A stretch of 64,000 nucleotides of DNA from Mizuhopecten yessoensis (taxonomy: Eukaryota): NCBI RefSeq assembly GCF_002113885.1, contig NW_018405583.1, positions 384,781 through 448,780 of the forward strand, written 5' to 3'. Of the stretch, positions 2,653-62,804 are shown in pieces; positions within the stretch are counted from its first letter, which is position 1; each line of letters starts with the position of its first letter. A program made the position numbers and the translations under genes. A model generated the notes under the pieces. It searched no databases. It had not been told where the DNA came from and was given only the letters and a program-made list of their open reading frames with translations.

Positions 2653-3602
2653 NNNNNNNNNNNNNNNNNNNNNNNNNNNNNNNNNNNNNNNNNNNNNNNN
2701 NNNNNNNNNNNNNNNNNNNNNNNNNNNNNNNNNNNNNNNNNNNNNNNNNNNNNNNNNNNNNNNNNNNNNNNNNNNNNNNNNNNNNNNNNNNNNNNNNNNN
2801 NNNNNNNNNNNNNNNNNNNNNNNNNNNNNNNNNNNNNNNNNNNNNNNNNNNNNNNNNNNNNNNNNNNNNNNNNNNNNNNNNNNNNNNNNNNNNNNNNNNN
2901 NNNNNNNNNNNNNNNNNNNNNNNNNNNNNNNNNNNNNNNNNNNNNNNNNNNNNNNNNNNNNNNNNNNNNNNNNNNNNNNNNNNNNNNNNNNNNNNNNNNN
3001 NNNNNNNNNNNNNNNNNNNNNNNNNNNNNNNNNNNNNNNNNNNNNNNNNNNNNNNNNNNNNNNNNNNNNNNNNNNNNNNNNNNNNNNNNNNNNNNNNNNN
3101 NNNNNNNNNNNNNNNNNNNNNNNNNNNNNNNNNNNNNNNNNNNNNNNNNNNNNNNNNNNNNNNNNNNNNNNNNNNNNNNNNNNNNNNNNNNNNNNNNNNN
3201 NNNNNNNNNNNNNNNNNNNNNNNNNNNNNNNNNNNNNNNNNNNNNNNNNNNNNNNNNNNNNNNNNNNNNNNNNNNNNNNNNNNNNNNNNNNNNNNNNNNN
3301 NNNNNNNNNNNNNNNNNNNNNNNNNNNNNNNNNNNNNNNNNNNNNNNNNNNNNNNNNNNNNNNNNNNNNNNNNNNNNNNNNNNNNNNNNNNNNNNNNNNN
3401 NNNNNNNNNNNNNNNNNNNNNNNNNNNNNNNNNNNNNNNNNNNNNNNNNNNNNNNNNNNNNNNNNNNNNNNNNNNNNNNNNNNNNNNNNNNNNNNNNNNN
3501 NNNNNNNNNNNNNNNNNNNNNNNNNNNNNNNNNNNNNNNNNNNNNNNNNNNNNNNNNNNNNNNNNNNNNNNNNNNNNNNNNNNNNNNNNNNNNNNNNNNN
3601 NN

Positions 3603-4429: not shown

Positions 4430-7400
4430 CACGTGTAGGAAATTCAAACTGTACGTTAATTTCAATATAACGGACTTCATTCTGTCCTCTGTCGTCCGTC
4501 TCAAAATTTCGACCAATCACCTAATCATACAAAAGTACTAGTTTGAATACGGTATACCGGGAAAATTTCGCCGCAGTGTAACTGTCGCCCTTTTCGCCCT
4601 CCGTAATAAGGGAGAATCTGTCACGACATTGAAAATAAATACACAACCTAATACACATAGTAAAAACATATAAAGGGCGAAATTAATACTGAGCGAAAAC
4701 CGTTTTACCAGTGAAAGGCGAAAAATTGACTGGGCGAATAAATTTCACGTGAGTAATCATTTATGCATAGCAAGAGACATGTAGGCCGAGAGTAAAACAT
4801 GCATCATTGTCATTGCGAGAAAAAAGTAAGATATGCAAGCTCGAGAAATGAAACGTGCGCTAATCATAAGAAAACTAGAATTGATTTTTACCGAAACATT
4901 TATAATATATCCTACCATTTTGAAGAATCCGCTGTCTTCTCCATAGATATGTTGTAAAACGGAGACCAATATGTGATGGTCGTATAGACGAACGTCCACG
5001 TTTTTGACCCCAACGATTGAGTCACCAGTCCTAAAAACGACAACAAGAGTTAACCGAAATGTCAACAATACCGTCATAAGAAAGTTCATATGACGATCGG
5101 GATTAAAACCTGGACCCGTATTCGTGAACCGCTCACATGTGTAAGCGTGATTCTGTGTTCAAAGCAACTTTCCTGTTGCTCGCTAAAGTGATGTTACCAA
5201 ATTAAAAAATAACTGTAAAGTAGAAAAACGATATCAGGCTTCACGATTCTCCTAAAGACTTTCATAAATACGGTAAGGTGCTCCGAAAGCGTACTATTCC
5301 CTGTAGCGCCATTCTCGATATTCAGGGGGTTACGCTCACTTTCGCTCTCTGCACCCCTGGGATATGACAGCAAAATTGAAGGCTCAGTGTGCGCCACTTT
5401 ATTGATGAGACAAGAAGACTAGTTTGATCCTTTGATATACATCAAAAGAATCGTGCGGTCACGTAACGGTAAACATTGACAGGCTTTGAAGTCGGGCGTT
5501 TCTCCTTTGTAGTCTTTAAAGGACAGGCATCAGTCTAGCGACTGGTGAGTTTTTTTACCCGAGACCAATCATACAGCTATTTTCGTGCCTTCAATTTTGC
5601 TATGACATGTTCCAAGGGTGCAGAGAGCGAAAGTGAGCGTAACCCCTGGATAACGTGGATGCTGTAACGCATTTTCTTTTGCAATAAAAGCCGAATAACA
5701 TAGTGATAGTCTAGGGTTTGTAATTGGAGTCAGTCAGTAGGCCACACGAAATGTTATTATTATTCCTTTCTGAATCAGTACAATACCATATTGGAAAGGT
5801 TGAATACTTACTGAAGACTCATGTGCTGCACGTGGCTGTTATCATTGTCGTTTACACAAATCGTGTGACCAGATAATCGTGATGACGTCAGAGAAAACCC
5901 AGCATTTTCTTTGTGTGATCTAGTTAGTTGAAACTCGATATGAGTTTGACGTTCTTTGAAGTCGTCATTCTAGAAAAACAGAATTCTTTTAAAATAAGAC
6001 TGACATTTATTTTATTTAGTTCGACATGATGTCCACTACATCACGGTACGTTTGCACTATCAATGCTTATATGCTTGAATATTTTCTGTTTAGTTCTACA
6101 TGACGTTAAATATTGGTAGATATTTTCTGTTTAGTTCTACATGACGTTAAATATTGGTAGATATTTTCTGTTTAGTCCTACATGACGTTAAATATTGGTA
6201 GATATTTTCTGTTTAGTTCTACATGACGTTAAATATTGGTAGATATTTTCTGTTTAGTTCTACATGACGTTAAATATTGGTAGATATTTTCTGTTTAGTT
6301 CTACATGACGTTAAATATTGGTAGATATTTTCTGTTTAGTTCTACATGACGTTAAATATTGGTAGATATTTTCTGTTTAGTTCTACATGACGTTAAATAT
6401 TGGTAGATATTTTCTGTTTAGTTCTACATGACGTTAAATATTGGTAGATATTTTCTGTTTAGTTCTACATGACGTTAAATATTGGTAGATATTTTCCGTT
6501 TAGTCTTACATGACGTTAAATATTGGTAGATATTTTCTGTTTAGTTCTACATGACGTTAAATATTGGTAGATATTTTCTGTTTAGTCCTACATGACGTTT
6601 AATATTGGTAGATATTTTCTGTTTAGTTCTACATGACGTTAAATATTGGTAGATATTTTCTGTTTAGTCTTACATGACTTTTAATATTGGTAGATATTTT
6701 CTGTTCAGTCCTACATGACGTTAAATACACTGTATTGGTAGATATTTTCTGTTTAGTCCCACATTACGTTAGATATTGGTGGATATTTTCTGTTTAGTAT
6801 TACATGACGTTTAATATATGTAGCTAATTAGATACTACTACTTTATTCTACCTTTGATAATTACTAATTAACCTGTTATATACCTATTGAATGAAATTGG
6901 CTCTGGGCAGCTTAGATGGGGTTTCTTTTTTGTTAGCTTACATCATGATATTAAATAACACCTTTCAGTTTAAATAAAGAATTATCATATTATTTGCAGG
7001 AGTTGGTGTAACCCTCCTGACAAATTATATATCTATTTGCTGAAATTGGCTTTTGATTCTCAACAGTGTATGGCTAGTGTGTTATACATATGGACTGTAC
7101 GGCCTGTATCTATTAATTGAATAAATCCAATATCACCAAATATTTATACAGATTACTTTATATGAATACCAGTAACGCATTGTCTAATACATTATTCACT
7201 GGAGATAATAGTCTAGTAAATATCTCAAATTAAATATCCCTAGTGAAAGGGTTACTATCTCAGGAATATTGAACAGGTCTGTTTACATCAAGGAGTTACT
7301 TCCCCTTATCCCAATCATCGTATCAATGCATAAATATATGTCTGTGTTACTTACCATCTGATGTCCCCTCAAGGAGAGGACTTAGGCAGGCTATGCCTGA

Positions 7401-15091: not shown

Positions 15092-15483
15092 TGTCGGTTC
15101 CGTTGATTCAACATTATACACTCGGTGAAATTGTTCACATATATTTTTCGAATGACATATATTTCGTATTGGTTTAACTTGAGATAACTTCGTCAAAAAA
15201 TGTACAGTTTTAGTATATATTAATATGTGATGGCGGATTTATATGGCAGTCAAAAGTCAGGAGTTGTTCTCGTCCGCTTAGCCCAATTGGCTTGTAAACT
15301 TCGGGTTATCAAATGTTGAAGCCTGTAGCGCGCTTATATCCCATTTAAAATAGCAAGGCATTTTTTACTTTTTTTATCTATGAATCTAGACAGCTGTCCC
15401 AAGTGTTGAACTTCCTCTGTTAAAGGTCTTTGGTTAAAAGCTAGGAAGTAACTTATAGAAAATGATTAAGTTGTACGAGTCCT

Positions 15484-18400
15484 TTATAGAGAATAAATGT
15501 GAAAAGTTGAATTTAATGCTGAAAAGGGAACAGAAGAGTCCGAAGAATCTTTCAATTTCATCTCCTTCTTTGTGTTATCCCATGTGAGGCACATGCCTGT
15601 TTATAAACAAATAAAAAGAATGAATCACTTTACATACATGTAGCACCTACTTCAAAATTCGAAATCGATGCCAAAAGCCAAACAAAGTTAACATTTACTT
15701 CAACATTTCGTCCATTCAGGACGACTCATCAGACGTTCTAAAGATCACATGAACAAAAACCCATATCCTAAGTATTTAAAAACATATACAGAAATATCGC
15801 TTAAGGGGAATGGTATATATATAAACTTTTATTATGTAACTATCGTATAGCTTTTAGATTCATTTCTTTTACAAAATTTCATTTAAACCACTCTAGAATA
15901 AATTTCAGCGCTAACTTAACGGTCAACATCGGTAGCACAGATAGTCTATTTGTCAGATAATGATGTATATTTTTATGTTAAATCGATGAGATAATGGGGA
16001 AATATGAACAAACGAACGATTTACATGGAGATTCGTAAAAGGATAAGGAAAAAAGACCAGGTGTTCCAGAAGGAAAAGCGTCTTCTACTTCATCGACCGC
16101 ACTTGTGTAAATCTAGATCAGATCTAAATAATGTCACTTTCTATAATAGATAAAGAGGTCGAGAAGGAATGTCTTTTCCCGCACCACAAACGTTATCAAA
16201 TGATTTGAATTTACATGAACGGCTTCAGTGCATATTTTTCTGCTGAAGTGTTTTAATTGAAAGTCAAAAGTACCTTTTATAGGCCATATTTGACAGGTCA
16301 ACTTACCTTTTAAGATGACAGATTCAAACATATATTCATTTTTTTCCCTCACGTTCTTCAATTTCAAGAGGAAAAACCTAGGATCAGCTTCTTGTAAAGA
16401 CGTCATCGATGTTATGTCCTCCGAGCCAACGGGGCAATTCTTCGTTTTGAAAGAGAAAATTACATTTTGTTATCAATTAATGTTTACATATAGAACCATC
16501 ATGTGAATTAAGGTAGTTGTTTGCTCATCGGGCCAGTATAGCCGTGCACAACATCTGATAATGTGTATCATGCAACTGCTCATTTGTAAAAATAAATTGG
16601 AACAGGCAAGGAATGAAAATGAGAATACTGCTTTAATGGCTGGGACGCGCTCACTAGTATATCAACGTTGAGCGTGGTCAGGGGCTTGATGGTTGCCTGT
16701 TCGCATGTTACAAAACTATGAAAACCAAATTTACCTCATTACCTAAATGATGTTCATTCATTTAGTTGCATTTTGTACGAAGTTTGTTGTGTGACATTTT
16801 TGAAAGTTAAGATATTTCAATCAGATAGTGCCTGTGTCTAATGTTATCCATCATGCAATGATAACACCTGTCAAATCAAGGAAAGCATACCGGTTGCTAC
16901 TATAATTTATATTTAACATAAATCAGTCTAAGTTACTATGTTAAGTTTCTCTTAATTTATAATTAATCACTTAAATTAGTTACATGCAGATTACATGAAT
17001 AATTACATTGGGTTCGAGATCACTTTCCCTAAGTTAAATACTAGCACTTAATTGTTTTTTAACAGTCGATTTAAGATAATATGTATCTGTTATCAACATG
17101 AAACTTACCGAGAGGTCAACAGACGACCGGTTTTTGACTGAAACGTACTTCTCCGTTCCTACCGGCTGCAGAATACATAGGAAGCAACTTTGATTTTCAC
17201 TATGCTGTTTTTGAAAACCATGAAATATACTTTTTCTGAAATGAACTGAAAGAAAATAAATTTTGTTTTTGCCATTACTGCTTTTTCAGCTTTAAGAAAT
17301 ATGGTCTCTGCATTCTGTCATCATTCAAGTAAATCGAAAGTTATAGTATCATGTGTTTTGTTATATGTTCCTTTATTTAAATATAGATAACAAAGTTACC
17401 AACTTCAATATTGATTGAGCCTCAATATTACTTTTTGTTCCCAATTAGAACTGTCTAACACAGAATTGACATATATTTGAGACTATTATGAAGGAATGCC
17501 TCATCACATGTTGGTCTGGTTTTTAATTGCTATCAACTCAACCAAACAAAAACACAAACAATAAATAAAAAATATATAGAACATTTGAAATAGCGAAATA
17601 CTATATAACCAACAAACCCCGGCTAAATAGCTAGACAACTAGGCCATTGAAGCCTGAGGTAATGTGATATATTACATGATGTGTCGGTTCGGGAAGGGAG
17701 ATTACTCATGGTCAGCTTTCCGTCTGTCCCACATTCCAGGTAAAGCTGGGATATCGGCGTGTCTATAGCTATCAGACATACATCTGTCCCCTTATGATGT
17801 ATACAGTAGACAGCGGAAAAACCAGAGAATCTGCTCAAAATTGTGGTTCTTGTAAACAAAGCAAAAGCTGAGCCACCACCTACAAAACACAACCAGTCTT
17901 ATTTTTTTAAACGGTTTATATCTTCTGTAATTAACAGAATTAAATATCATTTAAAAGGTCCAGCTGCACCATTGTGCATACAGACCAGGAGTTGAACTTT
18001 AGATTAACTTTTTTCGACTTTAAGCATTTTCCTTTTTTTATATTACACATTTAATGGTACTCTTATCTTAATGCATATATTACAAAGTAGTAAAACGTGA
18101 TGTTGTCACTGAAAATCACATATTTTCCCAATTGAATTATGTATGTAATATTATAGGCCTTAAACATGCATTTTATTCAATATTTTCATTAAAGATATCT
18201 ATTCCTTTTTGGTTCTCTCTGCAAATATTCAAAAACAAAATCTAATTTACGAAAGATGTTTATTATGGCATAAATATTTTTCTATTCAGATAATTTAAAA
18301 AAGATCTATGAAATTAAAATCTCTCGTTCACGATGATGAAAGTTTACCCCGAGATATCAAATAGTCCACCTCTATTTCAAAGGTCGTAACGGTGTCTTTA

Positions 18401-21400
18401 TCTGCATCGGTCCATTCTTTTCTTTCAATTACCTATAATTAGAAAAATTCTTATAAGAGACGAGACATAGTTGTGTAGTTGGAGCGGTTTTAGGATGTCC
18501 TATAAGAGATGAGTTGTAGTTGTGCGCTTGTAAGGATTTAAGGATGTCATATCAGAAATGAGACATAGTTGTGTAGTTGGAGGGGTTTTATGATATCCTA
18601 TAAGAAATGAGACAAAGATGTGCAGTTGAAGTGGTTTAAGGATGTCATATAAGAAATGAGGTATAGTTGTGTAGTTGGAGGGGTTTTATGATGTCCTATA
18701 AGAAATGAGACAAAGTTGTGCAGATGAAGTGGTTTTAGGATGTCCTATAAGAAATAAGGCATAGTTGTGCAGTTGGAACAGTTTAAGAATGTCTTATAAG
18801 AGAAGAGTTATAGTTGTGTGTGTAGTTGGAACGGTTTCAGGATGTCCTATGAGAGATGGGGTATACTTGTGTAGTTAGAGAAGTTTTAACCAACCCAATA
18901 ATGTTGACCAATACTTTAATTGAGTGGAGACACTCATTCTCTTGTTTCCAAATATAATCACAGGCTTGGCGGTAAAACTACGTTATTGAGCAAAGTACCA
19001 TTTTAACGCTCGTCTCAATTCCGTCCCAACAAGTAGGTATAACACTGTATGAAAATACCTCATTAGAGCGGATATCAATCATGTCAAGTATCCTGAACAC
19101 TGAACCTCGTTGAATATGATGAGGCTTTCATCATAATAACTGTAGTCACTTTGGACTAAAATATAAATTTTACCCTTATTGTATACATAGGCGTATATTG
19201 TCGTGACAGTCTTATTATCATATATAGACAGGCAGAAAATAACAAACCAGACATGGCCCAATTGAAATTAGACCACCTGTCCCATGGTTACTTAAGGATT
19301 TTGTACCGCTACAAAAAAAACTGTCAATATGTAATGGAATGTGTTTTCCCAGCATGGCTACAGCTTTGATAGATTATTACTGAAACGAACCCCATGCCTG
19401 GCGGGTATTTAATGCAAAACAAGGGATGATGAAATAAACTATATATAATCGACAACAGTGTATGAATGTAAAAATACAAAGTGGTAATTGAATTCTGGAC
19501 CTCAGGTTGTTATAATGTCGCTCTAACCAATAAACGAACGTGTTTGTTTACCAATAGCACAGCAGCTATATCTAAAACAAACTTAAAGATAGGTTACTGT
19601 GTATACAAAAAAGGAACCCTGGTGGAATTTTCAGTGTTTTGCATTCGATGGAACAGGAATGCTCAAGTGGTAAGATTTAAAAGTTCTTTGGGATACAAGG
19701 ATATATGGACATGTAAATCGTCAACTTCACTCTCGTGCGTTCTAGCATTCGATCAGAGCTTAATCTCAAACAGCAGCGGCGATAAGCTATTATTAATACA
19801 CAATGACCAATCAAATTTGTTGTAGCAAACACATCCACATAAACCGCCCATTATTAACAACAAACAGACTACACATTAGGTCATGATTACAAGCGTTGCA
19901 GACGCTCTCCCTAGAAACAAATTATTTTGATCATGGGAACATCAGAAATGGTAAAAACGCAACGAAAATAAAATCTTAAAAAAAGAGAAAGTAAAATATG
20001 AAAAAAGTGAAAGGTTCAAGAAAAACTGAAACAAAACGGCCCTCATAATATAAATACTAAGCCAAACCTCCTATAAAATGTAGTTTGCTATAATTACAAT
20101 GGACAGACGACTTCGTTCTGGGTGAAACATCTGTTGGAGAAACTCCACAACTTCATGATGTTCCCTGCAGCTTACAGCGATGTTATTGATGGCTAAGAGT
20201 TTGTCATTTTCCCTGTAAGATAATTTAAAGAAAAAACATAAATTCATATGTAAAAACGCCTTTCATAAATGAGAAAATTGTTCTACAACTAATCCCGGCA
20301 TTCTAACTAGGTAGAATTGTCTTTTATTGAGGACACCTTTGTCTCGTCTTTGCATTGGTTAATGCAAATGAGCATTTACTTTTGGCGAACGTTTTACGTT
20401 CCGATATCAAATGTCCTCAACAGAAAAGAACCATGTCTTCAGAATTTTTTTCAAAAGTACTAAAAACATATTAGTTTTTATTGTTATACTTATGAGAAAT
20501 GCTCATGTGTAACATTCACATATAAATAATGAAATGAAATTTTCATTTAGTTTATATTTCAATTAAAAGAAAAAGAAAAAATTCCAATGTTTGTTTGCTA
20601 TTTACAAGGTTAAATGTATCATATCGGACACTAGATAACATTACAATCAACGCAAATCAAAACTGATAATACGCTTAGCACTACGAAAGTCTTGGACAGT
20701 TATAGCCGTATGATTGGTGAGTTAGACAATACTTGATAATTTGACATGAAGATAGTGTGCTAGTAAGAGGGTTTCCTAGTATAAAAAGTATTATTCAGGC
20801 ACTCAAATAACAACGAAAATGTAACTAAGCAAAATGGCAAATGATATCAAAGGTATCCGGAAATGACGACATAGCATCGGCATATAAATTGCATAATGGA
20901 AAAACGGCAACTGACACCATTTACTCACGTTAGTTGTAATTCGGAAACTATGTAGTTATTTAAATCCAGTTCTACGATCCTAAATCCGGATTCACTTTGC
21001 TTAATCTTGAATCCAGCTTCCACTAACTCTCCAGCAGCCGTCTTGATCCAAATATCTGACTTTTTCCCACACAACCCATCGGTTTCTTTTACTTTATCCT
21101 TCAAAAAAAATCGAGACGTAGATTTCTTCCATTTGTATAAAAATTTGTATAACGTTTAAATCGTATACTGTGCAGATTGAAAATCAAAGAAATATTTATA
21201 AAAGGCAGGTTTCCACAGTTTTTCTCGTTGGGATTGCCCCAGCTGATAGCGCAAAGCCTTTTACCAAGACGGGTTCGGACATGAAAAGGTATGGGTCACC
21301 TTCCCAACCAAACATGTTTTCTCCGGACACTCCGGATTCCCCCAACATTAAGACCCCTTGCGTGCTTCCATGTACACTTTGGGCAACAAATGTGACCATA

Positions 21401-21934
21401 ATAGCTGATTGTTTTCTTTTCATATTTTTTTGTAAAATAAATAAACTTATAATTTAACTTACATCACATGCATACAGTCGTGTCAAATATAGATATGATC
21501 TCATATAGTTAATTTTACAATTCCATACGGAGCAGGATAAGGGTTTTTATAACTTTTAAGAGCTCTGAGAATGACGCATACACACCTTGACAAAAGTCAC
21601 AGCTTTGTGTGGTTTATAAAAAAGTGGACATGTTAACGGGTTTGGTTTTAGAGTCCGAGACTAAAACATGTACACTTAAACTTAAAAATGACTAGTTTGT
21701 TGTTTGGCTGGCAGACACGGAAGTCCGTCTGACTATCTTTTATATGTCATACAGATTGCTCATTAAAAGGAAAATAATCTGTCTTTGTGCAATTATCATC
21801 CATTTCGTATGAATTCTAACTTTATGATAGCATCGAGTGCCAAGTAATTGATTAGGCCAATATCTTACCTTAATCGATGTATCGGAAGGTAGCTTGTTGT
21901 GATCTGATACAGGATAGTGTAAAATGCCACCCAT
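15484..21934 (-). CDS. PDZ + IL-1-like beta-trefoil protein, type 1 copy A (8 coding exons, 340 aa)
   Basis: Exons (minus): 21934-21869, 21098-20929, 20212-20098, 18432-18348, 17879-17676, 17245-17109, 16439-16307, 15596-15484. All introns are GT-AG with compatible phases (0,2,0,1,1,0,1), giving a 1023-nt open frame. Protein: MGGILHYPVSDHNKLPSDTSIKDKVKETDGLCGKKSDIWIKTAAGELVEAGFKIKQSESGFRIVELDLNNYIVSELQLTENDKLLAINNIAVSCREHHEVVEFLQQMFHPERSRLSIVIERKEWTDADKDTVTTFEIEVDYLISRGGGSAFALFTRTTILSRFSGFSAVYCIHHKGTDVCLIAIDTPISQLYLECGTDGKLTMSNLPSRTDTSFHFRKSIFHGFQKQHSENQSCFLCILQPVGTEKYVSVKNRSSVDLSNCPVGSEDITSMTSLQEADPRFFLLKLKNVREKNEYMFESVILKGMCLTWDNTKKEMKLKDSSDSSVPFSALNSTFHIYSL*. PDZ hallmarks: AGFKI loop and NDKLLAINN..V....HHEVVEFL. 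IL-1 hallmark: DPRFF...YMFESVILKGMCL. Confidence 0.85.
18460..18885. repeat. ~49-bp minisatellite in a type-1A intron
   Basis: Units like GAGACATAGTTGTGTAGTTGGAGGGGTTTTATGATATCCTATAAGAAAT. Confidence 0.9.
21228..21372 (+). mobile_element. Degenerate copy of the SINE at 29223-29440 (also at about 51458-51600)
   Basis: Shares GGGTCACC..CC.AAC..GTTTTCTCCGG.CACTC.GG.TTCC..C.ACATTAAGA.CCC with the intact copy. Confidence 0.7.
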
Positions 21935-23840: not shown

Positions 23841-24674
23841 TTTAATAATAAAAAAAAAATACTTGTGCCTGTGTCTGTTGATTCTTAATTCAAAATACAA
23901 CACACCTCTGTATCAGGTAGTATTATCAATGTACCCAGCGACTTCGTATATGGTATGTTGTAGTTTACTATGTAATGTTCTATTAAGTATTAAATACCTT
24001 AAGTGTTCTCATCAAAATTCCCTGGGGGTGGGGGTTCCATGTTGGGGAAAATTGAGGGAAAATGGTGAAAGTGAAAATACATGATTTCAAAAGAAAATTC
24101 GCAAGGTGGGATGGTTTCCTGAAGCCAAAGNTTTAAGTTGGTGTACAAAGGACATTGGAAAACAAAAACATTCTGAAAAGAAACTCAGAATTATAAAATT
24201 TATTACTTACGATAAGACAATGATCCATATATGCCGACCTATAAACAACCCTTTGTTTATCTATAACGGTAGTTGACATGTCTATTGTTATCACTGTGTA
24301 TCATTGTGTTAGCGGATAATGACACCAGGATTGATATCAACGTCCCTTATCTGTTTCGTCATAAAGTTGAGCAGTACATTTTAAACACATTTATAACGTG
24401 TCGTCAAATTGTTTTTTACGGTCAATAAATTTGATATTAAGCACTCAAATTTTATCATTTACTTTCTTTATTGATATGATAATTATGTATGCTAATTATT
24501 TTTATGAATTTTGAAGTGTCAATAAAGTCATTTTACATGTACATATATAGCAGACTCACTCAATAGCACATCCGCATATTCAAATCAGCACTTTGTCGTC
24601 CTTGTAATCCTCCCCCTCCTCCTCCTTATTCCATCTTTCATAATAAAATCTTCATTAACATATCATTGGTTGAG

Positions 24675-24705
<31 letters not shown>

Positions 24706-24706
24706 G
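24675..24706. repeat. (CAT)n microsatellite
   Basis: About 10 TCA units. Confidence 0.9.
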
Positions 24707-27524
24707 AATTATTAGAATAGCCAAAGTAAGTGTAGCATGTCCACTGTAAAAAATGCCACTTACACTGAGAAAGTTAGATTTTACTAGTGAAGGGCGAATA
24801 TTCCACCGAACACATTTGTTACCACAGACGTGTTTCGTACACTATTTTGTGTTAGGTAAAAAGTGCTATTTTTTTGTATTAAGATTATTTTTATATCTTT
24901 ATTATTGGACTTGTTCCCCTTTTAACTAGTTTGCTTATTAAGATGTTAATAGCAATGTATTTATCCAGTTAATTTGTATCTTTTTCATATTTTTCTAATT
25001 TAGTTACAATGTAAACTATACAAATATATCAGTTTTAAGTATCAACCTGTGAAGCTTGTATAGTTTTCTTCATTTATAAATTACTTTCCGAAACTATATT
25101 AGTCTTCTCCCTTGGTTTAATCATTTGTATACATAACCATTAGTTTAGGACAGTATACAATGAAATGTTAATTTTATCCCTCTGGGTAATCTATAAATCA
25201 ACATAAACCCAGTTTACTTTACATATACGAATTATAATAACGAACGAAGACTATTTCAAATAATCAATTAGTAAGCAAACAGTAATCGAGAAATATAAAA
25301 TAAAGTCTTTTTGATTGATTTTTCGTTTTTATTATACAACCAATGAAACATATAAAACTGAACAATCAATACGCTAAACATAAATGAAATGCATATTTTA
25401 ACCATTTTACAAACTTAATTTAACAATCATATTAACAAGAAAACGTCTCACCTGAATAAAATACATAATAATAAACCCTTCTAAAACTCAAGCACGAGTT
25501 CTGGCCTTAATTCGGGCAACACCCTGAAGTACGTTACATACTGACAAAACGCATAGTCTTTAGACAACGATATCGGTTTTAATGTTTCCAAAGCCTTCAA
25601 ATTGTAGGGAAAAAGTGTTAAAATTGATAACTGAAATTGTGTGTGAGAATGCAGGCCTGGATTTACTTTAAATGTGTAATGAAATGGAAATTCCCCAAAG
25701 CTCCTATATATATATATACAATACACACAATACACTTACTTTTATTGTAAATTGAGGAAAAAGGTGGAAAGAAAATGTTACGTGTATCACAAAGACATTA
25801 GTGGTAGTGAGACAATGTATGGTATGATAAAATCGCAATGGTCCATCAACAGAAAATGTATAAGAACTCAGTAGAAAACAGACAAAAGGCTTTGTGTCAG
25901 AAGAGACATGGCAATTCAAAGAAGGATAGACAAGGGGATAAAACGGGAGGGGGGGGGAACGATTCAGACAGAAACCTCTTTTTTATGTCTTAAATGAATC
26001 CTAGTTAGGGGGTACTAGAGAAAAACCCTACTTCTGAAACGCCTTTTGATAGGTGCTTCCATACAGTTTTGCAGTGTGTTAGAGAAGGATTAGCATTCCC
26101 GAAATCTGCACAGATAATATATTAATATATACATGGGAGTACACATGAAAGTTCTAGAAACTTGTATATATACTTTACGTCTCAATACAATTGTTAATTC
26201 TAGTTTAACAGAACAGGAGGCAGTCTTTGAGATGTACGGTTAAGGTGTATTACAATTTGTTTAAAAACATCAAATAGTATATGAGATAAAGCTGAATATA
26301 TAGAATTTCTGCTTTTGGACAAAACATTTTTATGTTACAAAATTTAGAAATTGATTTCGGTACAATTAATGGTTTCCTTCGACTCTTTCATATACATGTA
26401 CATTCACACTGGCAAATCTTTTCGCACTTCCCTTAGTTACAACAGTGACATAACTCCAGGTCTGTAGCACTTATCTCCCCTCGTACGTCGACTTGTACAA
26501 TCTCTACGCAGAGTTGTCGTTCCTTTTCAATTAAAGGGATTGCAAGGACCGTAACTCTACGTGGAGATTTGGACTCGTAAAGAGGGATATAAACTTATTT
26601 GAGTTATTGCCCTTCTTTACCATCATCTTAGTGTGTCTCAGACCACAGAATAAGATTATCTGAGTCCGTTGTTGTGAGACTCATCAAGTCATGTCAATCT
26701 AATTTCCTTATGCGTCGGTACATGGTTAAATACACAAAAATGTTAAAGTCGGCTGTGAAAACGATGGATCAAAAAGTTAAAAAAAAAAAACACAAAAAAA
26801 ACGTATGAGCATTGAAAACAATATACGTAAACATTAATGTATGTTGCTATAAATACATTGCCGGGGCAACTGTTTACATGTAGGTCACACATGGGTTTTA
26901 AACATTGATTCAAGTTTATAGTGTAATGTGACATTATTGCAGTTTTTGGACAATGATGCAGTGAAAATAAATGTATCGGTCGTTGTATATATATAGATTG
27001 ATCTAGGTCATCAACGAAGACATGGAGGGTACGAATGTTTGTTAATAAAAGATTGAGATGAGTAATTTATGGCTGATGAGTTTGTTCGTTTTACAAGGGA
27101 TATACTATACATACATTATATTATACATTTTATTATATTGGTAGTACATGTATATATATAGTATTCACCGTGTAGATAATACACATATGCATGTATTCCA
27201 AGTGGTAATACATTTATTATATTCTATAGATAAATATAGTCACGTAATTTATTGATGCACATGATACATACGTGGTGTATGCGTACATATACATACACGA
27301 TTCTGCTATAAATACAAGTACATCTCCAGTTAGAATGCATCAATTGTGTAAATAATAATTTATACTAAAGTCAAGTTACACAATATGAATGACTTGACAG
27401 CATCAGGATGACATACACATGAGTCGGTTAGAATAATACATGTAAACATTGCCTGTAACTAGGGCATAAGTTTAATAAGAATATATTCAAAACAGTATAC
27501 AGTATCCATGTATACTATTAGTTA

Positions 27525-28440: not shown

Positions 28441-31400
28441 TCACGTGAATATATCAAACTGCAGTTCTGGCGAGATTTGGTAGAAATGGTTTAAATCTGA
28501 TTTTGGCTTTTTCATCGATAATCCATTTTTTCCACATCTTAAGTACACACCTAAAATATAACAACATTTTTAATCTTTTTATTATTTTGCCATGTTAAAG
28601 ATATACTTTTGCATTAATTCGCAAGCAGAATAAATCTTAAATTGAAATAGATTACGATAATCAATTTCACATACATATTCAAATAAAATATATTGTGAAT
28701 GAACATATTACGAAAACCAATCGTGAAATTGAATATTCACGAAACAAAATGATATAAAGCTGTCAGAGAGAGGAGGGACAAGATTTTAATAATTGAATAA
28801 ATTGATATGAAGAAAACCCAATAGAATTATCATTTGCAAAAAAACACGAAAAACAAAATCAAAATCAAACGTCAATGCATCAGCTGACATGACGTCATGA
28901 GTTTTTGTTTATTAAACCAACCATACATGTAACAGATATATCTGTATTAAGTACGTATAAGGTATAATTGTATGCATCATCATTAACAAAATCATGTAAA
29001 ATTAGATTAAAAATCTAAAAATATTTAAAAAGGTCCAGACACAAAGTCAATGGGTGACTTACCTTCATATACCAGTGACTCCAAAAGATATTTGTGGTTT
29101 TTCATCAGACGGACCTTGAAGAACCGACAGTCCGGTTTCCGTACCGTTGAGATATCACGAGAAAGAGAGGAACTCTCCTGTAAACATTTAATAGGAATCA
29201 TATATAATTTATCATTAGTGTTGGTCGGGTGGCGCAGTGGAAAACGCACTCGCTTTTTACCAAGGCGGCCGGGGTTCGATTCCTCGATCGGACGTGAACA
29301 GACATGGGGTCACCTGCCCGAACACGTAGGTTTTCTCCGGGCACTCAGGTTTCCTCTCACATTAAGATCCCCCGTGCGCGAACATCCGGGCCAGCAAGAG
29401 TGATTAATATAAGTTGAAATCAATTGTTTCATAACTGTTGTATATATATTTATATAAAAATGTTACTTACTCCTATCGCGACTCTGTTCCCACCCTAAAT
29501 AGTAAGAAATGTAATATGTTTATACCGACACAAATGTTACTTACTCCTATCCCAACTCTGTTCCCACCCTAAATAGTAAGAAATGTAATATGTTTATACC
29601 GACACAAATGTTACTTACTCCTATCCCGACTCGATTGCCACTCTGTACTGTGACAAATGTGTTGCTGTCTAAAGATCTGAAGGCGCAGAAGAAGACTGGT
29701 GGACACATTGAGTTACTGACCGTCCGAGCCTCCAGTCCATGAAAGGTCCACCATTGGAACTGAACTAAAGACAAATAGAAGATATGTAACATCTCATATA
29801 CCTAGGAGCTATATATACTCTATTAACCACATCTTCAGAACACGAGAACCCGGAGTCAAAACAGAAGGGCAATAATACGAACTTGGAAACACGGAAACGG
29901 AACCAGGGTTTAGGTAAGGGTAAGTTTTTTGTCTAAGTGCAATTCGTAGCACAAAAAGAAATCAAAAGAAATCAACATCATATCAAGTAACATCAAAAAC
30001 AAATCAAATTGCAACAAATTTGTATAAATACAGTATACACCTTGTTATACTGCCACCATTTTTCCAGAGAAAGGGTGACGTTATGAAAGAGTTTGGCGTT
30101 AATTGAGGGAAATGTGTTTGTGAATTCTTAAGAAAACGAGAATAAAAGACACTAAAATATGTAGGCGGTAATCTAACCAAAATCTACCGAGGTGCACCAT
30201 ATCAAGGTTTTAATGTAACACCAAAACCACATCACAATCAAATGGTTTTTTCATGGCAAAGATTGTTTATAGACTGTCATCATGAATCACTCAGTTGACG
30301 TATTTTGTGACACAAAGTCCCTTGATGGGTGCCACATGTAATGAAAAAAGTTCATTTTTGCGTAAAGTAATGGAACGTTTAATACGTTGGTTATTTTCTT
30401 AGAGGAAATGACAGATATTTTCTAAAAATGTTAAATTAAATTGGACCTTGAAAGTACATGCATGGTAGGCATGCAATCTATGAATGATTTTAACGTGGCA
30501 AATTATCTCCAAAATTCTTTCTCAAATTATTATGATTCGAGTAAGTTTTAAAATATCTCTCTAGAGATAAATATTGCAAAGTTAATATGAATGAGTTCAC
30601 AATATAAATATAATTTATATGAATCTTCATTGGATTATAATTACTTAAATAGAACAGATAACGCGTGATGTGTTTTTAAATATTGAATATACAATATAAC
30701 CTCGACTTAACGTCACAAGCTGAAATATCAGTATAACATCCATATATTTACAAACGATAAATATGCAATATGACCTATCTCTATTGATATTCGATGTTGA
30801 CAGAGTAAAGCCTTTATTTAGCGTCAGCCATACTATTTATAGTAAGACAAATACCAACAGTTATATTAAAATATTAATATAATATTATTAAGTTCCATGT
30901 AGACACTTTTTTGATAGACACAAAGTATGATACTTAGCTAGGAACCACATACTACTGTAACAGGAAAGAAAATAGTGTGCTTTCACCGGGAATCGAACCC
31001 TCGATACCACCCTCTAACTCGAAGCTAGAAGGCGACCGTAATCCTATGTACAATTAAAACCTGGCACACTACTCCCCTCTTTTTAAATGTGTTCGCCCTC
31101 GAACACCACAACCAAGGTTCTAACTCCCTGTCACCACAGGGTGAGCCATGGACACCATTTGTAACAGGAAAGTGAATAGTGTGCTTCCACCAGGTATCAA
31201 ACCCCAATCCCTAGGTTCCTAGTCGGACGCTCTACCACTGAGCTAAAGGGAAATTCCCTTTAGCTCGAAGCTAGAAGGCGACCGTAATCCAATGTACAAT
31301 TATAACCTGCCACACTTCCATTGAGTTTGTTTTACTTTCTCCCGATATAAGACATATCCCCCCACCCCCCACCCCCACCCCCCACTTCTATAGATCGCTT

Positions 31401-34400
31401 TTAGTTTTAAGTGTTACTAGTAAACAATCAACCCCTCTCTATGACGTCAAAATATGTCAAGGAACATGGTGGTAGTATATGGAGTATTCCATGAACATGT
31501 TCACTTGCAGCATCCTTAGAGTAACAAAACAATATTACTTACATTTGACGTCACTTTTACCGGTGAAGGGGTTACTCGTGGTCAGTTGTTTATCCTGGAC
31601 ACTCAAGTGTTGGTCATTGTTCTTGATCCAACACACCTTGGAGCCTTTAAACTCCACACAAATAATTTTGGTGAACGTCAAATATGGGCAAGTGACGACA
31701 TCGACGGTCATTCGTAGAATAGTATCTCCTTCAAAGGAAATGTAAACATGTATACTCTACCTGGTATAATATCGGATAATTATTGGTAAACATGTGTACT
31801 CTACCTTGTATAATATTGGATAATTCATGGTAACAATGTATATTCTACCTGTTATAATATCGGATAATTATTGGTAAACATGTATACTCTACCTGGTATA
31901 ATATCGGATAATTATTGGTAAACATGTATACTCTACCTGGTATAATATTGGATAATTATTGGTAAACATGTATACTCTACCTTGTATAATATCGGATAAT
32001 TCATGGTAACAATGTATACTCTACCTGTTATAATATAGGATAATTATTANGATTGGGGCCATAAGTAAATATATAAGATGACCAAGTGTTCCCTACATGC
32101 TCATTGGTTGCACCCTAATCACATTGTGGTGAGTGATTTGGTCGTTATGACGTCCCCTTTAATTGAAATATCACATAATTGTGTGCCAAATCTTACGTTC
32201 TTTCTGTTTGTCAATTATAAAAACAGCAGCAGCACATCATACGCAATAACTGCATACTTTAATTGCTAAATATCAGGTGATATGGGCATGGAATTTGTTT
32301 TGTTTTATGATACTTTTACGGGTTACTAACGAGTTGATTATATCTGGAATTACGTTGTAAAATATGCTATAATATACCTTTTGCATTACAAGAAGACGAA
32401 TTAATCTAAACGACGCATTGGTTTTCAGCCAAGTGTGACATAGGAGGCAACTCTAATATTAATCAATTCGGAAATCAAATAATGACTAATAAACTCTCAC
32501 CGGATGGATTTCCACTATTTAGAGGATGTCAAGCCTTCATTAAGAGATTACCTTCGGAAAGTCCATAAAAGGATTTACAACATTTTAACCAATGAAATAT
32601 CGGAAATTATTCTTTAAAGAATGACTTGAATCCATTGAAAACGTAAATTAGTGTACTTACCACGTGTAGGAAATTCAAACTGTACGTTAATTTCAATATA
32701 ACGGACTTCATTCTGTCCTCTGTCGTCCGTCTCAAAATTTCGACCAATCACCTAATCATACAAAAGTACCAGTTTGAATACGGTATACCGGGAAAATTTC
32801 GCCGCAGTTTAACTGTCGCCCTTTTCGCCCTCCGTAACGAGGGAGAATCTGTCACGACATTGAAAATAAATACACAACCTAATACACGTAGTAATAACAA
32901 GTAAAGGGCGAAATTAACCCTGAACGAAAACTGATTCTACCAGTGAAAGGCGAAAAATTGACTGGGCGAATAAATTTCACGTGAATAATCATTTATACAT
33001 AGCAAGACACATGCAGGCCGAGAGTAAAACATGCATCATTGTTCTTGCGAAAAAAAGTAAAACATGCAGGCTCACTCAATGAAACATGCGCTAATCCTGA
33101 GAAATGTAGAATTGATTTTTACCGAAACATTTATAATATATCCTACCATTTTGAAGAATCCACTGTCTTCTCCATAGATATGTTGTAACACGGAGACCAA
33201 TATGTGATGGTCGTATAGACGAACGTCCACGTTTTTGACCCCAACGATTGAGTCATCAGTCCTAAAAAAGACATAAGAAAGTTCATATGACGATCGGGAT
33301 CAAAACCTGGACCCGTATTCGTGAACCGTTCTCATGTTTAAGCGTGGTTCTGTGTCCAAAGCAACTTTCCTGTTGCTCGCTAAAGTGATGTGACCAAATT
33401 AAAAAATAACTATAAAGTAAAAAAACGATATAAGGCTTCACGATTTTCTTAAAGCCTTCCAAATCACTGACGAAATCTTATTTTGAAAAAAAGAATGGTT
33501 TCATAAATACGGCAAAGTGCTCAGTGTGCGCCACCTTGTTGATGAAACAAGAAGACTAGTTTGATCCTATGATAAACATAAAAGAATCGCACGGTCACGT
33601 AACAGTAAAAATTGACAAGCTTTGAAGTCGGGCGTTTCTCCTTTGTAGTCTTTAAATGACAGGCATCATTCTAGCGATTGGTCAGGTTTTTTTTACCCGA
33701 GACCAATCAAACAGCTATTTTCGTGCCTTCAATTTTGCTATGACATGTTCCAAGGGTGCAGAGAGCGAAAGTGAACGTAACCCCTGTATATCGAGGATGC
33801 TGTAACGCATTTGCTTTCGCAATAAAAGCCGAATAACATAGGGATAGTCATGGGTTTGTAATTGGAGTCAGTAGGCCACACGAAATGTTATTATTATTCC
33901 TTTCTGAATCAGTTCAATACCATATTGGAAAGGTTGAATACTTACTGTAGACCCATGTGCTGCACGTGGCTGTTATCATTGTCGGTTACACAGATCGTGT
34001 GACCAGATAATCGTGATGACGTCAGAGAAAACCCAGCATTTTCTTTGTGTGATCTAGTTAGTTGAAACTCGATATGAGTTTGACGTTCTTTGAGGTCTTC
34101 ATTCTAGAAAAACAGAATTCTTTTAAAATAAGACTGAAATTTATATTTTTCTGTTTAGTCCAACATTACGTTAATATTGGTAGATATTTTCTGTTAAGTC
34201 CTACATGACGTTAAATATTGGTAGATATTTTCTGTTAAGTCCTACATGACGTTAAATATTGGTAGATATTTTCTGTTCAGTCCTAGATGACGTTAGATAT
34301 TGGTAGATATGTTCTGTTTAGTCCCACATGTTGTTAGATATTGGTAGATATTTTCTGTTTAATCCCACATGACGTTAGATATTGGTAGATATTATCTATT

Positions 34401-44640: not shown

Positions 44641-45531
44641 TTATTGTTTAGGAAGTACACGCCTTTATCATGTTCCATTATAGATGTATTAGATGCCCTA
44701 TCACTTGTAAATCTTTATTTGACACAGGTCGTTCATTCATTTGACGTAACAAGAATTGAATACCTTTACCAAGGTCAACCATATCATTGGCTGTTATATT
44801 ACACCAAAATAATCATGTCTATTGTGTATTATTTTCCTTGTCAGGACAGCGAGCAATTTTAACAAAGAAATAATTGCATCAGAACCTTATGGATATTCAT
44901 TAAAACTTCTGAATAGTTCCCTCCGTGACGTCAAAGACATTCCCTTAAAGGAAAGGTTTGTTTTATATCTTTTACATTATTGAAAGAAAACCTGTCATTT
45001 TGTAACGTTGGTTCCTAAAAAAATCAATCCAATTATCCATATGGTTCTTTTTTGACTGTGTACATATCACTTTCGGAATTCGATAAACGGACATAGTTTT
45101 TAATTACATTTCTCCAACTCCATAACGTGTGAAAACTTTGTTATAAAGAGGTGATGGCACTGAAAGAGACAGTCAGAAAAACACGCATAGAGACACAGAG
45201 AAAGACTATAACAGCTCTTAGCCCTTTAACATATTCAGAAGATGTGTTAATTTTGTAGACAATCATGTTGACGGAGAAAAAACAACACAACACAGACAAT
45301 GCTAAAGTAATGATCAGTAATATATTATTCATAACACAAATGACAACAGGAATGACTTCAAAATTTAAACGGTAACAAAAGTGATGTTACAATATATTTT
45401 ATAATACATTTTTGTTACGTTTTTATCTATGAATCTAGACAGCTGTCCCAAGTGTTGAACTTCTTCTATTAAAGCTCTTTGGTTAAAAGCTTAGAAGTAA
45501 CTTATAGAAACTGATTAATTGTACGAGTCCT

Positions 45532-48500
45532 TTATAGAGAATAAATGTGAAAAGTTGAATAAAATGCTGAGTCCGTAGAATCTCTCAATTTCATCTTCTT
45601 CTTTTTGTTATCCCATGTGAGGCACATTCCTGTTTATAAATAAACAAATAGAATTATTCGATTTAAATACAACGTTATGTAGCACCTACTTCAAAATTTG
45701 AAATCGATGCCAAAAGCCAAACAAAGTTAACATTTACTTCACCATTTCGTCCATTCAGGACGACTCATTAGACGTTCTAAAGATCACATGAACAACAAGG
45801 TTACCGCGAGCGGTATATAATACGCCCGTCACTCATTGAATGAGCAGTTGTTTGTATGATTGAAATATATGAAGTATTTGTGAGTAATTGATATTAAAAG
45901 AGAAATCATTCAACATAACTGGTAGATCAATGAGTGCAATACAACATCATCGAACGCATGCATCGCATTAATGAAACCAAGGGGAATAACTCCAATAATT
46001 ACGGTCGGATAATGGCGGTTATCGAACTTGTCCGAGGTTTCATGGTAATTAACCTTGTTGTGAAGTTTGAAGTTAATCCGTTAATAATNNNNNNNNNNNN
46101 NNNNNNNNNNNNNNNNNNNNNNNNNNNNNNNNNNNNNNNNNNNNNNNNNNNNNNNNNNNNNNNNNNNNNNNNNNNNNNNNNNNNNNNNNNNNNNNNNNNN
46201 NNNNNNNNNNNNNNNNNNNNNNNNNNNNNNNNNNNNNNNNNNNNNNNNNNNNNNNNNNNNNNNNNNNNNNNNNNNNNNNNNNNNNNNNNNNNNNNGGGAA
46301 ATATGAACAAATGAACGATTTACATGAAGATTCCTAAACGGATAAGGAAAAACGACCAGGTGTTCCAGAAGGATAAGCGTCTTCTACTTCATCGACCACA
46401 CTTGTGTAAATCTAGATCAGATCTGAATAATGTCACTTACTATAATAGAGAAAGAGGTCGAGAAGGGAAGTCTTTTCCTGCATCACAAACGTTATCAAAT
46501 GATTTGAAATTACGTGAACGGTTTCAGTTTTCTTCGCTTAATTTTTTAATTGAAAGTCAAAGTACCTTTACTATGCCATATTTTACAGGTCAACTTACCT
46601 TTTAAGATGACAGATTCAAGCACATATTCATTCTTTTCCCTCACGTTCTTCATTTTCAAGAGGAAAAACCTAGGATCAGCTTCTTGTAAAGACGTCATCG
46701 ATGTTATGTCTTCCGAGCCAACGGGGCAATTCTTCGTTTCGACAGAGAAAATTACATTTTGTTAGCAATTAATGTTTACATATAGAACCATCATATGAAT
46801 TGAGGTAGTTGTTTGCTCATCGGGCCAGTATAGCCGTGCACAACATCTGATAATGTTTATCTTGCAACTGCTTATTTGTAAAAATAAATTGTAACAGATA
46901 ATGAATGAAAGTGAGAATACTGCCTTACTGGCTGGGACGTGCTCACTAGTATATCAACGTCGAGCATGGTCAGGGGCTTGAAGGGTGCCTGTTCACATGT
47001 TGCAAAACAAACTATGAAAACCAAATTTACCTTCTTACCTAAATGATGTTCATTCATTTGGTTTTATTTTGTACGAAGTTTGTTTTGCGACATTTTTGAA
47101 CGTTAAGATATTTCAATCAGATAGTGCCTGTGTTTAATCTTATCCATCATGCAACGATAACACCTGTCAAATCAAGGAAAGCATACCGGTTGCTACCATA
47201 ATTTGAATTTAACATCAATCAGTCCAAGTTACTATGTTAAGTTTCTCTTAATTGATAATCAATCACTTAAATTAGTTACATGCATATTACATGAAATAAT
47301 TACATTGGGTTTCTCTAAGTTAAATACTCTGGCAATGACAGTAAAAAATACTAGCACTTAATTGTTTTATAACAGTCGATTTAAGATAATATGTATCTGT
47401 TATCAACATGAAACTTACCGAGAGGTCAACAGACGACCAGTTTTTGACAGATACGTACTTCTCCGTTCCTACCGGCTGAAGAATACATAGGAAGCAACTT
47501 TGGTTTTCACTATGCTGTTTTTGAAAACCATGAAATATACTTTTTCTGAAATGAACTGAAAGAAAATAAATTTTGCTTTTGTCATTATTGCTTTTTCAAT
47601 TTTAAGAAATATGGTCTCTGCTTTCTGTCATCATTCATGTAGATCTAAAGTTATATTATCATGTGTTTTGTTATATGTTCCTTTATTTAAATATAAATAA
47701 CAAAGTTACCAATTCAATATTGGTTGAGCCTCAATATTACTTTTTGTTCCCAATTATAACTGTAAAATACAGAATTAACATATATTTGAAATTATTATGA
47801 AGGAATGCCACATAACATGTTGGTCTGGTTTATAATTGCTATCAACTCAACCAAACAAAAACACAAACAAATATATAAAAAATATATAGAACATTTAAAA
47901 TAGCGAAATACTATATAACCAACAAACCCCGGCTAAATAGCTAGGCAACTAGGCCATTGAAGCCTGAGGTAATGTGATATATTACATGATGTGTCGGTTC
48001 GGGAAGGGAGATTACTCATGGTCAGCTTTCCGTCTGTCCCACATTTTAGATAAAGCTGGGATATCGGCGTGTCTATGGCTAGCAGACATACATCAGTCCC
48101 CTTATGATGTATACAGTAGACAGCGGAAAAACCAGAGAATCTGCTCAAAATTGTGGTTCTTGTAAACAAAGCAACAGCTGAGCCAACACCTCCTACACCT
48201 CCTACAAAACACAATCAATCTCATTTTTCTAAACGGTTTATATCTTCTGTACTTAACAGAATTAAATATCATTTAAAAGGTACAACTGTACCATTGTGCA
48301 TACAGACGAGGAGTTGAACTTAAGAGTAATTTTTTTTCGACTTTCAGCATTTTCCTTTAATATATTACAGATTTAATGGTACTCTTATCTTAATGCATAT
48401 ATTGCAAAGTAGTAAAACGTGATGTTGTCACTGAAAATCACATATTTTCCCAATTGATTTATGTATGTTATATTATAGGCCTTATGCATGCATATTATTC

Positions 48501-54891: not shown

Positions 54892-55735
54892 GAGTATTAA
54901 ATTACATTAAGTGTTCTCATCCATATCGGGCGGTCTTATGTGGTACGGAGACTTCGTATTCACAGCGTGTCAAGGAGCACCTCTTCAACAGCATCCACAC
55001 GTTTGTTTATGTAGATAACCTTCTTTTCAACTAATATGTTTTTTTCATGGAAAACAGATTAAGCAAACAACACATACATGCTATCAATTTAACAAATCAT
55101 AAAACTCATCGGAAATAAAAGTAGGTGATGCAAATGGTGATTAGCTATCAACGATAAACGAATGCTTTGTTTTCCTACAAGGATATTGATTAAATAATCT
55201 GTCTGCGCGCGGTGGCGAAAGCTTCTTATATGTAAACATACAAGGACACTGGTTGGAAAGTACGCTATATATATAGACAACCTGTACAAAAAGTAACAGC
55301 TTGTTTTTGAAGAGTCATAAGTAGATGGACATAAATGTTAACGTAGAGGAAAACACGTCTTGCGATAATGACGAAACACCAGGAAAAGATTCGGGTGGAA
55401 ACTCTTCATGACCGGGAATACGACTTTCCCTTATCTTTCTAGTTCCTTTTTTATGAACAAGACATTGTACTTGCAAATGTTCAAAATATGTTCCATTCAT
55501 CATGAAAAGAAACAATGTGCATTTAAGTTAACAATTTTACCATTTATCTTCATTTTATTTCAAATAATTCTTTTGGGAAACATTTTTATCAATAGAAACA
55601 TATGAAAAAGAATTATTTGTATATGTTATGTAACTTTGTGTATTTTATATTTACATTTACTGTATTTATGATTGCAATGAATACGTCCCTCAAGATGAAT
55701 CGACCACGAATGTGTATGGATGCGATGATGAGTGG

Positions 55736-55736
55736 A

Positions 55737-55796
<60 letters not shown>
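55736..55796. repeat. (ATG)n microsatellite
   Basis: About 20 ATG units; explains the poly-M/I/H ORFs in the track. Confidence 0.97.
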
Positions 55797-61738: not shown

Positions 61739-62804
61739 AGCATTTGTAACAGTTTATAGATGTTTAACTATTTCCCGCACTGATTATCTGACATATTTAT
61801 ACACCAACCGAAAAGTTATGGAAAATAATCCTCGTAATCTTTATTAGGTATATTGAATCCAAGTTCAAAACAAAATATATTATTTATATTTTACGTCTGA
61901 GATATGTTACATATGATAAATGTACACAGCTAGATAAATAGCCTATAGACCACATTTTTAACATTTATAGAAAAAAAAATAGATTTTTTTTTATAAACAT
62001 TTAGGTTAGTGTTGAATATCGTCAATCAGTCGTGTATGGTTTGGATATTTATGTCGACTATCATGCTGATTTGATTTTTTTCCAACTTTACTGTCCGTTT
62101 CTTGTTTCATCGTGTACACGCCGTATATAAACTGTTTCAGTGACATTAGGGAAACTTTTTACGTCCTCATTTCTAGTAAATGTCACTAGTGGGTTTTGCA
62201 TTATGATTTTAAAATGCGGTACTCGACCGTATTAAGTGTATTACTTCTATTGTATGAACAAAATATAAGTCATAACAGGAAATAACAAAATATGGTTACA
62301 AGTACAACCCTTATGTAACGTTATATCAATAAATGATGCTATGTAAACAAAGTATAACTATTTTCCTCTCTTGCCAACAGGAAACTATGAAACCGTTTAG
62401 AAATTATAGTATATTATTGCACGAGGATAGTGATGGGTACCATAGTTTTTACCCTCCAGAATACATGTTTCGTTTTTGCTTCTATAACACTTATGATATT
62501 TTATGCTGGTATCCCTTCAAATCTTCTGATTACGTTTCAATGTTATTTTCTATTTACTATGATAAATTATCTAAACGTCATTTGTTAATGATTTTGATGA
62601 TTTTTGTTTACATGTTGTATGCCGGATATCACTTTCAATGACTAGACAAATGCTTATGGCTATGTCACATGATTTCAGCAAGTTAAAAGAAATCCGGTTT
62701 GAGCACAGAACCCATTATTTAGCATGAGAAAGGAAACGGACACTTGGGCATGTGTCCATGTAATTTACCATTGTTTTACTACCTTTACTTAACGTTAAGG
62801 AACG

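Follow-up and report, generated by a model that had tools for sequence, protein, structure and literature searches.

The segment between positions 15484 and 17879 (minus strand) of a window of 64,000 nucleotides (nt) from the Yesso scallop Mizuhopecten yessoensis, the whole stretch of DNA that was analyzed, holds the last four coding exons of the gene LOC110449157, which encodes a protein of 340 amino acids (RefSeq; here P0007). We consider it probable, taking the interpretation as a whole, that this gene is a member of the IL-1anc family with an IL-1-like β-trefoil, and that the two central introns of its trefoil were inherited from an ancestor shared by the IL-1 and FGF trefoil cytokines. 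The segment would be the trefoil-coding 3' half of a gene for a leaderless protein composed of a PDZ-like domain, a linker, and an IL-1-like trefoil, and the gene would belong to a tandem cluster together with a near-identical copy and a divergent paralog. Four introns would cut the trefoil: one of phase 1 at the border between linker and trefoil, one of phase 1 at the start of strand 4, one of phase 0 at the end of strand 7, and one of phase 1 between strands 9 and 10.

The exon map was obtained by placing P0007 on the window, which it tiles with every residue matched across eight coding exons; the intron phases are 0, 2, 0, 1, 1, 0, and 1. In the four trefoil exons, designated A to D, all acceptors are AG and all donors are GT. 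The corresponding introns fall in the codon of Gly146 (phase 1), in the codon of Phe214 (phase 1), between Ser259 and Asn260 (phase 0), and in the codon of Gly304 (phase 1). This copy of the gene is called type 1A, and its coding exons are the following.

21869-21934, minus strand: coding exon 1, 66 nt, with the start codon, phase 0 out (exact P0007 tiling)
20929-21098, minus strand: coding exon 2, 170 nt, first half of the PDZ-like domain, phase 2 out (P0007 tiling; weak Pfam PDZ match at residues 51-106)
20098-20212, minus strand: coding exon 3, 115 nt, second half of the PDZ-like domain, phase 0 out (P0007 tiling; a profile search of the Protein Data Bank, PDB, gave PDZ chains alone)
18348-18432, minus strand: coding exon 4, 85 nt, putative linker between PDZ and trefoil, phase 1 out at Gly146 (P0007 tiling)
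17676-17879, minus strand: exon A, 204 nt, phase 1-1, predicted tail of the linker and strands 1-3 (strands from motifs and a low-confidence model)
17109-17245, minus strand: exon B, 137 nt, phase 1-0, predicted trefoil strands 4-7
16307-16439, minus strand: exon C, 133 nt, phase 0-1, predicted loop, DPRFF strand (8), and FES strand (9)
15484-15596, minus strand: exon D, 113 nt including TAA, predicted strands 10-12; its first two bases finish the split Gly304 codon

An exhaustive protein search with exon A as the sole query recovered isoform X2 of the neighboring gene LOC110449155 and an orthologue from Ylistrum balloti, and a follow-up word search recovered LOC110449157 itself (P0007) and an orthologue from Pecten maximus. 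The orthologues of P0007, namely P0008 (P. maximus), P0002 (Y. balloti), and P0009, are free of gaps at the A/B and C/D junctions. Support of the transcript type came from a single record, a 1130-nt Logan contig on which an orthologue has an uninterrupted, colinear open reading frame of 343 amino acids; a lookup of encoding contigs found no record for P0007. The four database searches returned only pectinid orthologues, apart from an insect Nup214 repeat match (P0003) that was judged spurious.

The same gene structure occurs three times in the window. Two type 1 genes sit on a tandem segmental duplication (~30.5 kb; 15361-20500 versus 45410-50725, with 88-91% identity). The second copy, type 1B, is LOC110449155 (P0004) and has the boundaries of type 1A, exon A alone being longer. 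Between them, at 28441-31728, lies a divergent paralog, type 2, with 22-27% identity per exon to type 1. The trefoil exons of these two genes are as follows.

47986-48201, minus strand: type 1B exon A, 216 nt, phase 1-1 (P0004)
47419-47555, minus strand: type 1B exon B, 137 nt, phase 1-0
46599-46731, minus strand: type 1B exon C, 133 nt, phase 0-1
45532-45629, minus strand: type 1B exon D, including the stop codon
31543-31728, minus strand: type 2 exon A', 186 nt, phase 1-1
29619-29764, minus strand: type 2 exon B', 146 nt, phase 1-0
29063-29177, minus strand: type 2 exon C', 115 nt, phase 0-1, with the DCRFF and LES motifs
28441-28550, minus strand: type 2 exon D', 110 nt including TGA

Type 2 was compared exon by exon and not as a joined, spliced model. 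Its first three exon pieces start and stop at the columns where the type 1 exons do, and the fourth piece was misplaced by the aligner onto the first hairpin of the domain. All intron positions and phases are common to types 1A, 1B, and 2, and all frames are open with canonical splice sites in the three paralogs, which are 25-95% identical. The preliminary description of this DNA had given, for both paralog types, a phase 1-1 exon of 204 or 186 nt, a phase 1-0 exon of 137 or 146 nt, and a phase-0 start for the next one; the P0007 tiling and the exon alignment reproduced these lengths and phases exactly. It had also placed the phase-0 start ahead of a D-x-R-F-F motif, and this motif indeed lies within exon C, 19 codons from its start in type 1 and 15 in type 2. 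The additional phase-1 intron that it had reported in the Gly after the ES motif was found as described: the Gly lies five residues past F/LES, and in both types the intron follows the first base of its codon (G/GC and G/GT). The fourth intron would be older than the split of the two scallop paralog types.

To compare these introns with those of vertebrate IL-1 genes, the scallop strands were numbered backwards from the F/LES motif as putative strand 9, which makes R-F-F strand 8, S-V-D-L-S strand 7, and exon B strands 4-7. With this numbering, strand 4 would begin at or directly after the phase-1 intron, strand 7 would end at the phase-0 intron, and the extra intron would separate strands 9 and 10. 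The strands called by DSSP in an AlphaFold2 model with a predicted local distance difference test (pLDDT) score of 35 agree with the numbering (residues 246-252, 255-260, 280-289, 292-301, 305-310, and 315-320). Two registers are possible for the first strand of the domain, and neither affects the placement of the introns.

Human IL1B has exons of 165, 131, and 213 nt. Strand 4 begins at its phase-1 intron, which falls at mature Val40; strand 7 ends at Glu83, and the phase-0 intron comes directly behind this residue, 13-14 residues ahead of K-R-F-V-F. The published coding intron phases of IL-1β genes are II, 0, I, I, and 0, and the 12 strands lie within the last three exons (PMC4880838); the 1/1/0 layout that the preliminary description had ascribed to IL1B agrees with these phases. 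Equivalence of the scallop and IL1B positions was judged by strand order and motifs and not by a residue-level structural alignment. The scallop and IL1B genes resemble each other in that the last three IL1B introns have phases 1, 1, and 0, with all 12 strands behind the first of them, that the middle exon is similar in size and content (strands 4-7), that the next exon opens 13-19 residues before an x-R-F-[VF]-F strand, and that the FES motif is present. The first three trefoil introns of the scallop gene would thus correspond to the last three introns of vertebrate IL-1β genes, and the border intron would mark the junction of the pro-part and the trefoil, as it does in IL1B. The two genes differ in that IL1B has no PDZ domain and an undivided last exon, whereas the scallop gene adds the phase-1 intron in the Gly five residues past F/LES; unlike IL1B, the scallop protein is not recognized by Pfam IL1.

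A comparison with FGF genes had been named beforehand as the test that could refute the argument from shared introns. The FGF genes were found exon by exon with a Pfam FGF scan of the M. yessoensis genome (988 Mb in 82,659 contigs). Two exons exceeded the Pfam FGF cut-off and covered profile positions 35-66 and 43-68 of 124, a region that we take, from established FGF structures, to be strands 4-7. The exon at C3777:280183-280293 (minus strand; 107 nt) follows a pyrimidine tract and AG, opens with two bases that finish a codon (phase 1), and ends at a codon boundary before GTAAGT (phase 0). The exon at C5574:220461-220559 (plus strand; 128 nt) also has phase 1 in and phase 0 out. A simple motif search found neither exon 1 nor exon 3 of these two genes within 10 kb, and documentation is confined to the central exons. 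Exon 2 of human FGF16 closes with the third base of codon 126, hence in phase 0 (PMC4190875), and the two core introns of Fgf genes are regarded as ancestral (PMC11733497). FGF genes are therefore like the scallop genes in encoding a β-trefoil and in having a central exon with phase 1 in and phase 0 out over strands 4-7, bounded by two ancestral core introns; they differ in having neither a PDZ domain nor the F/LES motif.

The preliminary description had taken the shared introns as independent evidence of true homology to IL-1. Since two FGF genes of the same genome have the two central introns with phases 1-0 around strands 4-7, this pair cannot separate IL-1 from FGF, and the part of the claim that was specific to IL-1 did not hold. 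The other part, directed against fold convergence, did: a pair common to IL-1, IL-1anc, and FGF argues against an independent origin from an unrelated trefoil and for shared ancestry within the superfamily. What suggests the IL-1 side is the putative PDZ fusion, together with the F/LES motif, the phase-1 border intron at the N-terminal end of the trefoil, and the structural neighbors.

The family to which we assign the scallop genes was recently described as IL-1anc (Fontenla-Iglesias et al., Nat Ecol Evol 2026; preprint 2025; PMC13736523). IL-1anc proteins combine a PDZ domain with an IL-1 trefoil that has F/LES in strand 9. They are spread throughout Eumetazoa, with several genes per bivalve species and three in P. 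maximus (PmaxIL-1.1-1.3). The trefoil is encoded in 3-5 exons, and its two central introns have a conserved phasing relative to F/LES. The argument for homology from introns has already been published there, protostomes included (Extended Data Fig. 7), and the layout of PDZ plus trefoil is reported for IL-1 family genes of fish and lamprey, as is synteny across phyla. The scallop genes share with this family a C-terminal IL-1-like trefoil, F/LES in the putative strand 9, no obvious signal peptide, and a tandem arrangement of bivalve genes; an N-terminal PDZ domain would be a further common feature. P0008 from P. maximus, which may be one of the three PmaxIL-1 genes, is 52-54% identical to the scallop protein. 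The introns of P0007 in codon 214 (phase 1) and after codon 259 (phase 0), which are the same in 1B and type 2, agree with the IL-1anc phasing as worded in the published text (PMC13736523) and with the phases of IL-1β genes (PMC4880838). The lumpfish gene nIL-1F encodes a leaderless protein of ~350 amino acids with a PDZ and an IL-1 domain in a multi-exon gene with 7 coding exons (PMC7144542); the 8 coding exons of the scallop gene fit one extra intron, and the count does not show which one. The main text on IL-1anc does not name the Yesso scallop genes, which RefSeq labels 'uncharacterized' (PMC13736523). What is new here is the membership of these genes in IL-1anc, the intron idea being already in print.

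The fold was examined on the orthologue P0002, and not on P0007 itself. Its model in the ESM Atlas (pLDDT 0.64) had as best neighbors two chordate 'Interleukin-1' clusters carrying PF00340, with template modeling (TM) scores of 0.70 and 0.67 over residues 144-332. Ricin-type trefoils ranked after them with TM ~0.6, and no FGF cluster was listed among the structural neighbors of this model. The language-model features of P0007 and P0002 were nearest to clusters of IL-18, IL-33, and IL-1, at 0.83-0.87. The motif of strand 9 is FES in type 1A and LES in 1B, in type 2, and in three orthologues, so that E-S is invariant. Read directly against the PROSITE IL-1 signature, the Pro after F-x-S-x-x-x is replaced by Lys or Glu.

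In the N-terminal part, Pfam PDZ and PDZ_6 matched 4 of 5 orthologues at a common position, with E values of 0.004-0.06; these matches do not reach the curated cut-offs. A PDB profile search with this part gave weak matches (E 0.04-1), and 15 of 15 were PDZ chains. In P0007 and P0004, residues 1-30 are hydrophilic and lack a hydrophobic core; by direct reading, as opposed to a predictor, there is no signal peptide.

Several results weigh against the assignment to IL-1anc. Pfam IL1 (PF00340) was not matched at E up to 10 by single exons or full proteins, and the genome scan with it left this locus without a hit. When the trefoil alignment was searched as a profile against the PDB, the matches were at chance level and included no IL-1 or FGF chain. 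None of the sequence methods connects the protein with IL-1. The language-model features score below 0.9 and are, by the tool's own rating, leads only. AlphaFold2 models of the trefoil reached a pLDDT of 31 with five orthologues and 35 when the type 2 exon pieces were added as separate rows; both are unusable, because the alignment is too shallow, and the strand positions consequently rest on motifs, on the modest Atlas model of P0002, and on the published description. The PDZ assignment comes from matches under the Pfam cut-offs and is weak.

It might be argued that the trefoil belongs on the FGF side, or is equally near to FGF, and that the match with IL1B is a structure common to FGF and IL-1 genes. 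The two FGF genes of this genome speak for this, since their central introns have the same phases around strands 4-7 and their exons are of similar size (107 and 128 nt, compared with 137 and 146 nt). However, Pfam FGF (PF00167) was not matched at E up to 10 by P0007, P0004, P0008, P0002, or P0009, and the structure and feature neighbors in the Atlas are IL-1, IL-18, and IL-33 clusters, with no FGF cluster listed. IL-1β genes have a phase-1 intron where the trefoil begins on its N-terminal side, and canonical three-exon FGF genes are not known to have one there. F/LES and the PDZ fusion, moreover, mark IL-1anc, including vertebrate nIL-1F (PMC13736523; PMC7144542). We regard an FGF affiliation as very improbable.

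Convergence, in which an unrelated trefoil gained introns at similar loops by chance or through a bias of proto-splice sites, is in our judgment very improbable. In its favor, sequence homology to IL-1 is undetectable, and a comparison of the three putative trefoil units by hhalign was not significant, so that an internal three-fold repeat is not shown by sequence; β-trefoils are also widespread, ricin-type trefoils reach TM ~0.6, and phases 1 and 0 are common. It is harder to reconcile with two phase-matched positions that bound an exon of nearly equal length (131 nt in IL1B; 137 and 146 nt in the scallop genes) and with a third, phase-1 intron at the domain border. By a rough estimate, which was not computed, two introns would fall within ~3 codons of set strand ends with the right phases by chance in about 1 in 100 to 1 in 1000 cases. 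Also against it stand the IL-1 family genes of fish and lamprey, which have the same PDZ plus trefoil architecture and for which synteny across phyla is reported (PMC13736523). That the exons are not spliced as drawn, because the gene is a pseudogene or its annotation an artefact, seems to us the least probable of these readings. The RefSeq proteins are indeed automatic predictions, and in isoform X2 of the sister copy exon B is followed by an alternative last exon; yet the splice sites and open frames are preserved in all three paralogs, the orthologues in two other scallops are colinear, and the uninterrupted frame on the 1130-nt contig is what a spliced transcript would give.

Under the assignment to IL-1anc, the two middle introns would be the FGF core introns as well, ancient and derived from a common IL-1/FGF trefoil cytokine ancestor; since FGF genes have them as core introns, inheritance from this ancestor is the best reading. 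A more specific proposal, which we put forward tentatively and with less confidence than an even chance would warrant, is that the phase-1/phase-0 pair around strands 4-7 is an inherited mark of one pre-bilaterian IL-1/FGF cytokine gene, and that the fourth intron is either ancestral to IL-1anc and lost in vertebrates or a molluscan gain. The product may be a leaderless pro-cytokine whose trefoil would be released when the linker encoded by exon 4 and exon A is cut. This proposal is made by analogy with the characterized sea urchin and lamprey members (PMC13736523).

With this assignment, two RefSeq 'uncharacterized' genes of the Yesso scallop and their divergent neighboring paralog are placed in IL-1anc with an exact exon map. 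The FGF comparison also adds a caution to the published argument: a conserved phasing in the trefoil indicates a deep origin and is evidence for the IL-1/FGF superfamily, not for IL-1 itself. Gene-structure calls of invertebrate IL-1 homologues should carry FGF and other trefoil genes as controls. Since one scallop genome has the pair in both families, a survey of introns across trefoil families could directly test the long-debated common origin of IL-1 and FGF.

Some other features of the cluster were recorded. Isoform X2 of LOC110449155 (P0001, 311 amino acids) uses an alternative terminal exon at 46875-47063 (minus strand), inside the B/C intron, and its product after the exit from exon B would comprise the PDZ domain and strands 1-7 only. 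In the same copy, a run of N at 46089-46295 falls in the C/D intron. Both type 1 copies have an array of a ~49-bp repeat in the intron that leads from the linker exon to exon A (18449-18888 and 48799-49332). Near-identical frames that resemble the PDZ exon of type 2 occur in three copies on the minus strand (1158-1532, 4760-5158, and 33075-33299), two of them flanking a run of N at 2653-3602; they suggest an extra type 2 copy extending past the start of the window, or an assembly duplicate. On a separate small contig, a piece resembling exon C (C50775:290-403, minus strand; 56.6 bits to the trefoil profile) may represent a further copy or an unplaced haplotype.

The window as a whole is AT-rich animal DNA with ~34% guanine plus cytosine. 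At 62799-63374 (plus strand), an open frame of 192 amino acids with a reverse-transcriptase-like motif (…FADD…) is probably a fragment of a retroelement lacking long terminal repeats (non-LTR). The trinucleotide runs at 24641-24717 and 55629-55931, which read as poly-His, poly-Asp, or poly-Ile depending on the frame, are microsatellites and not genes.

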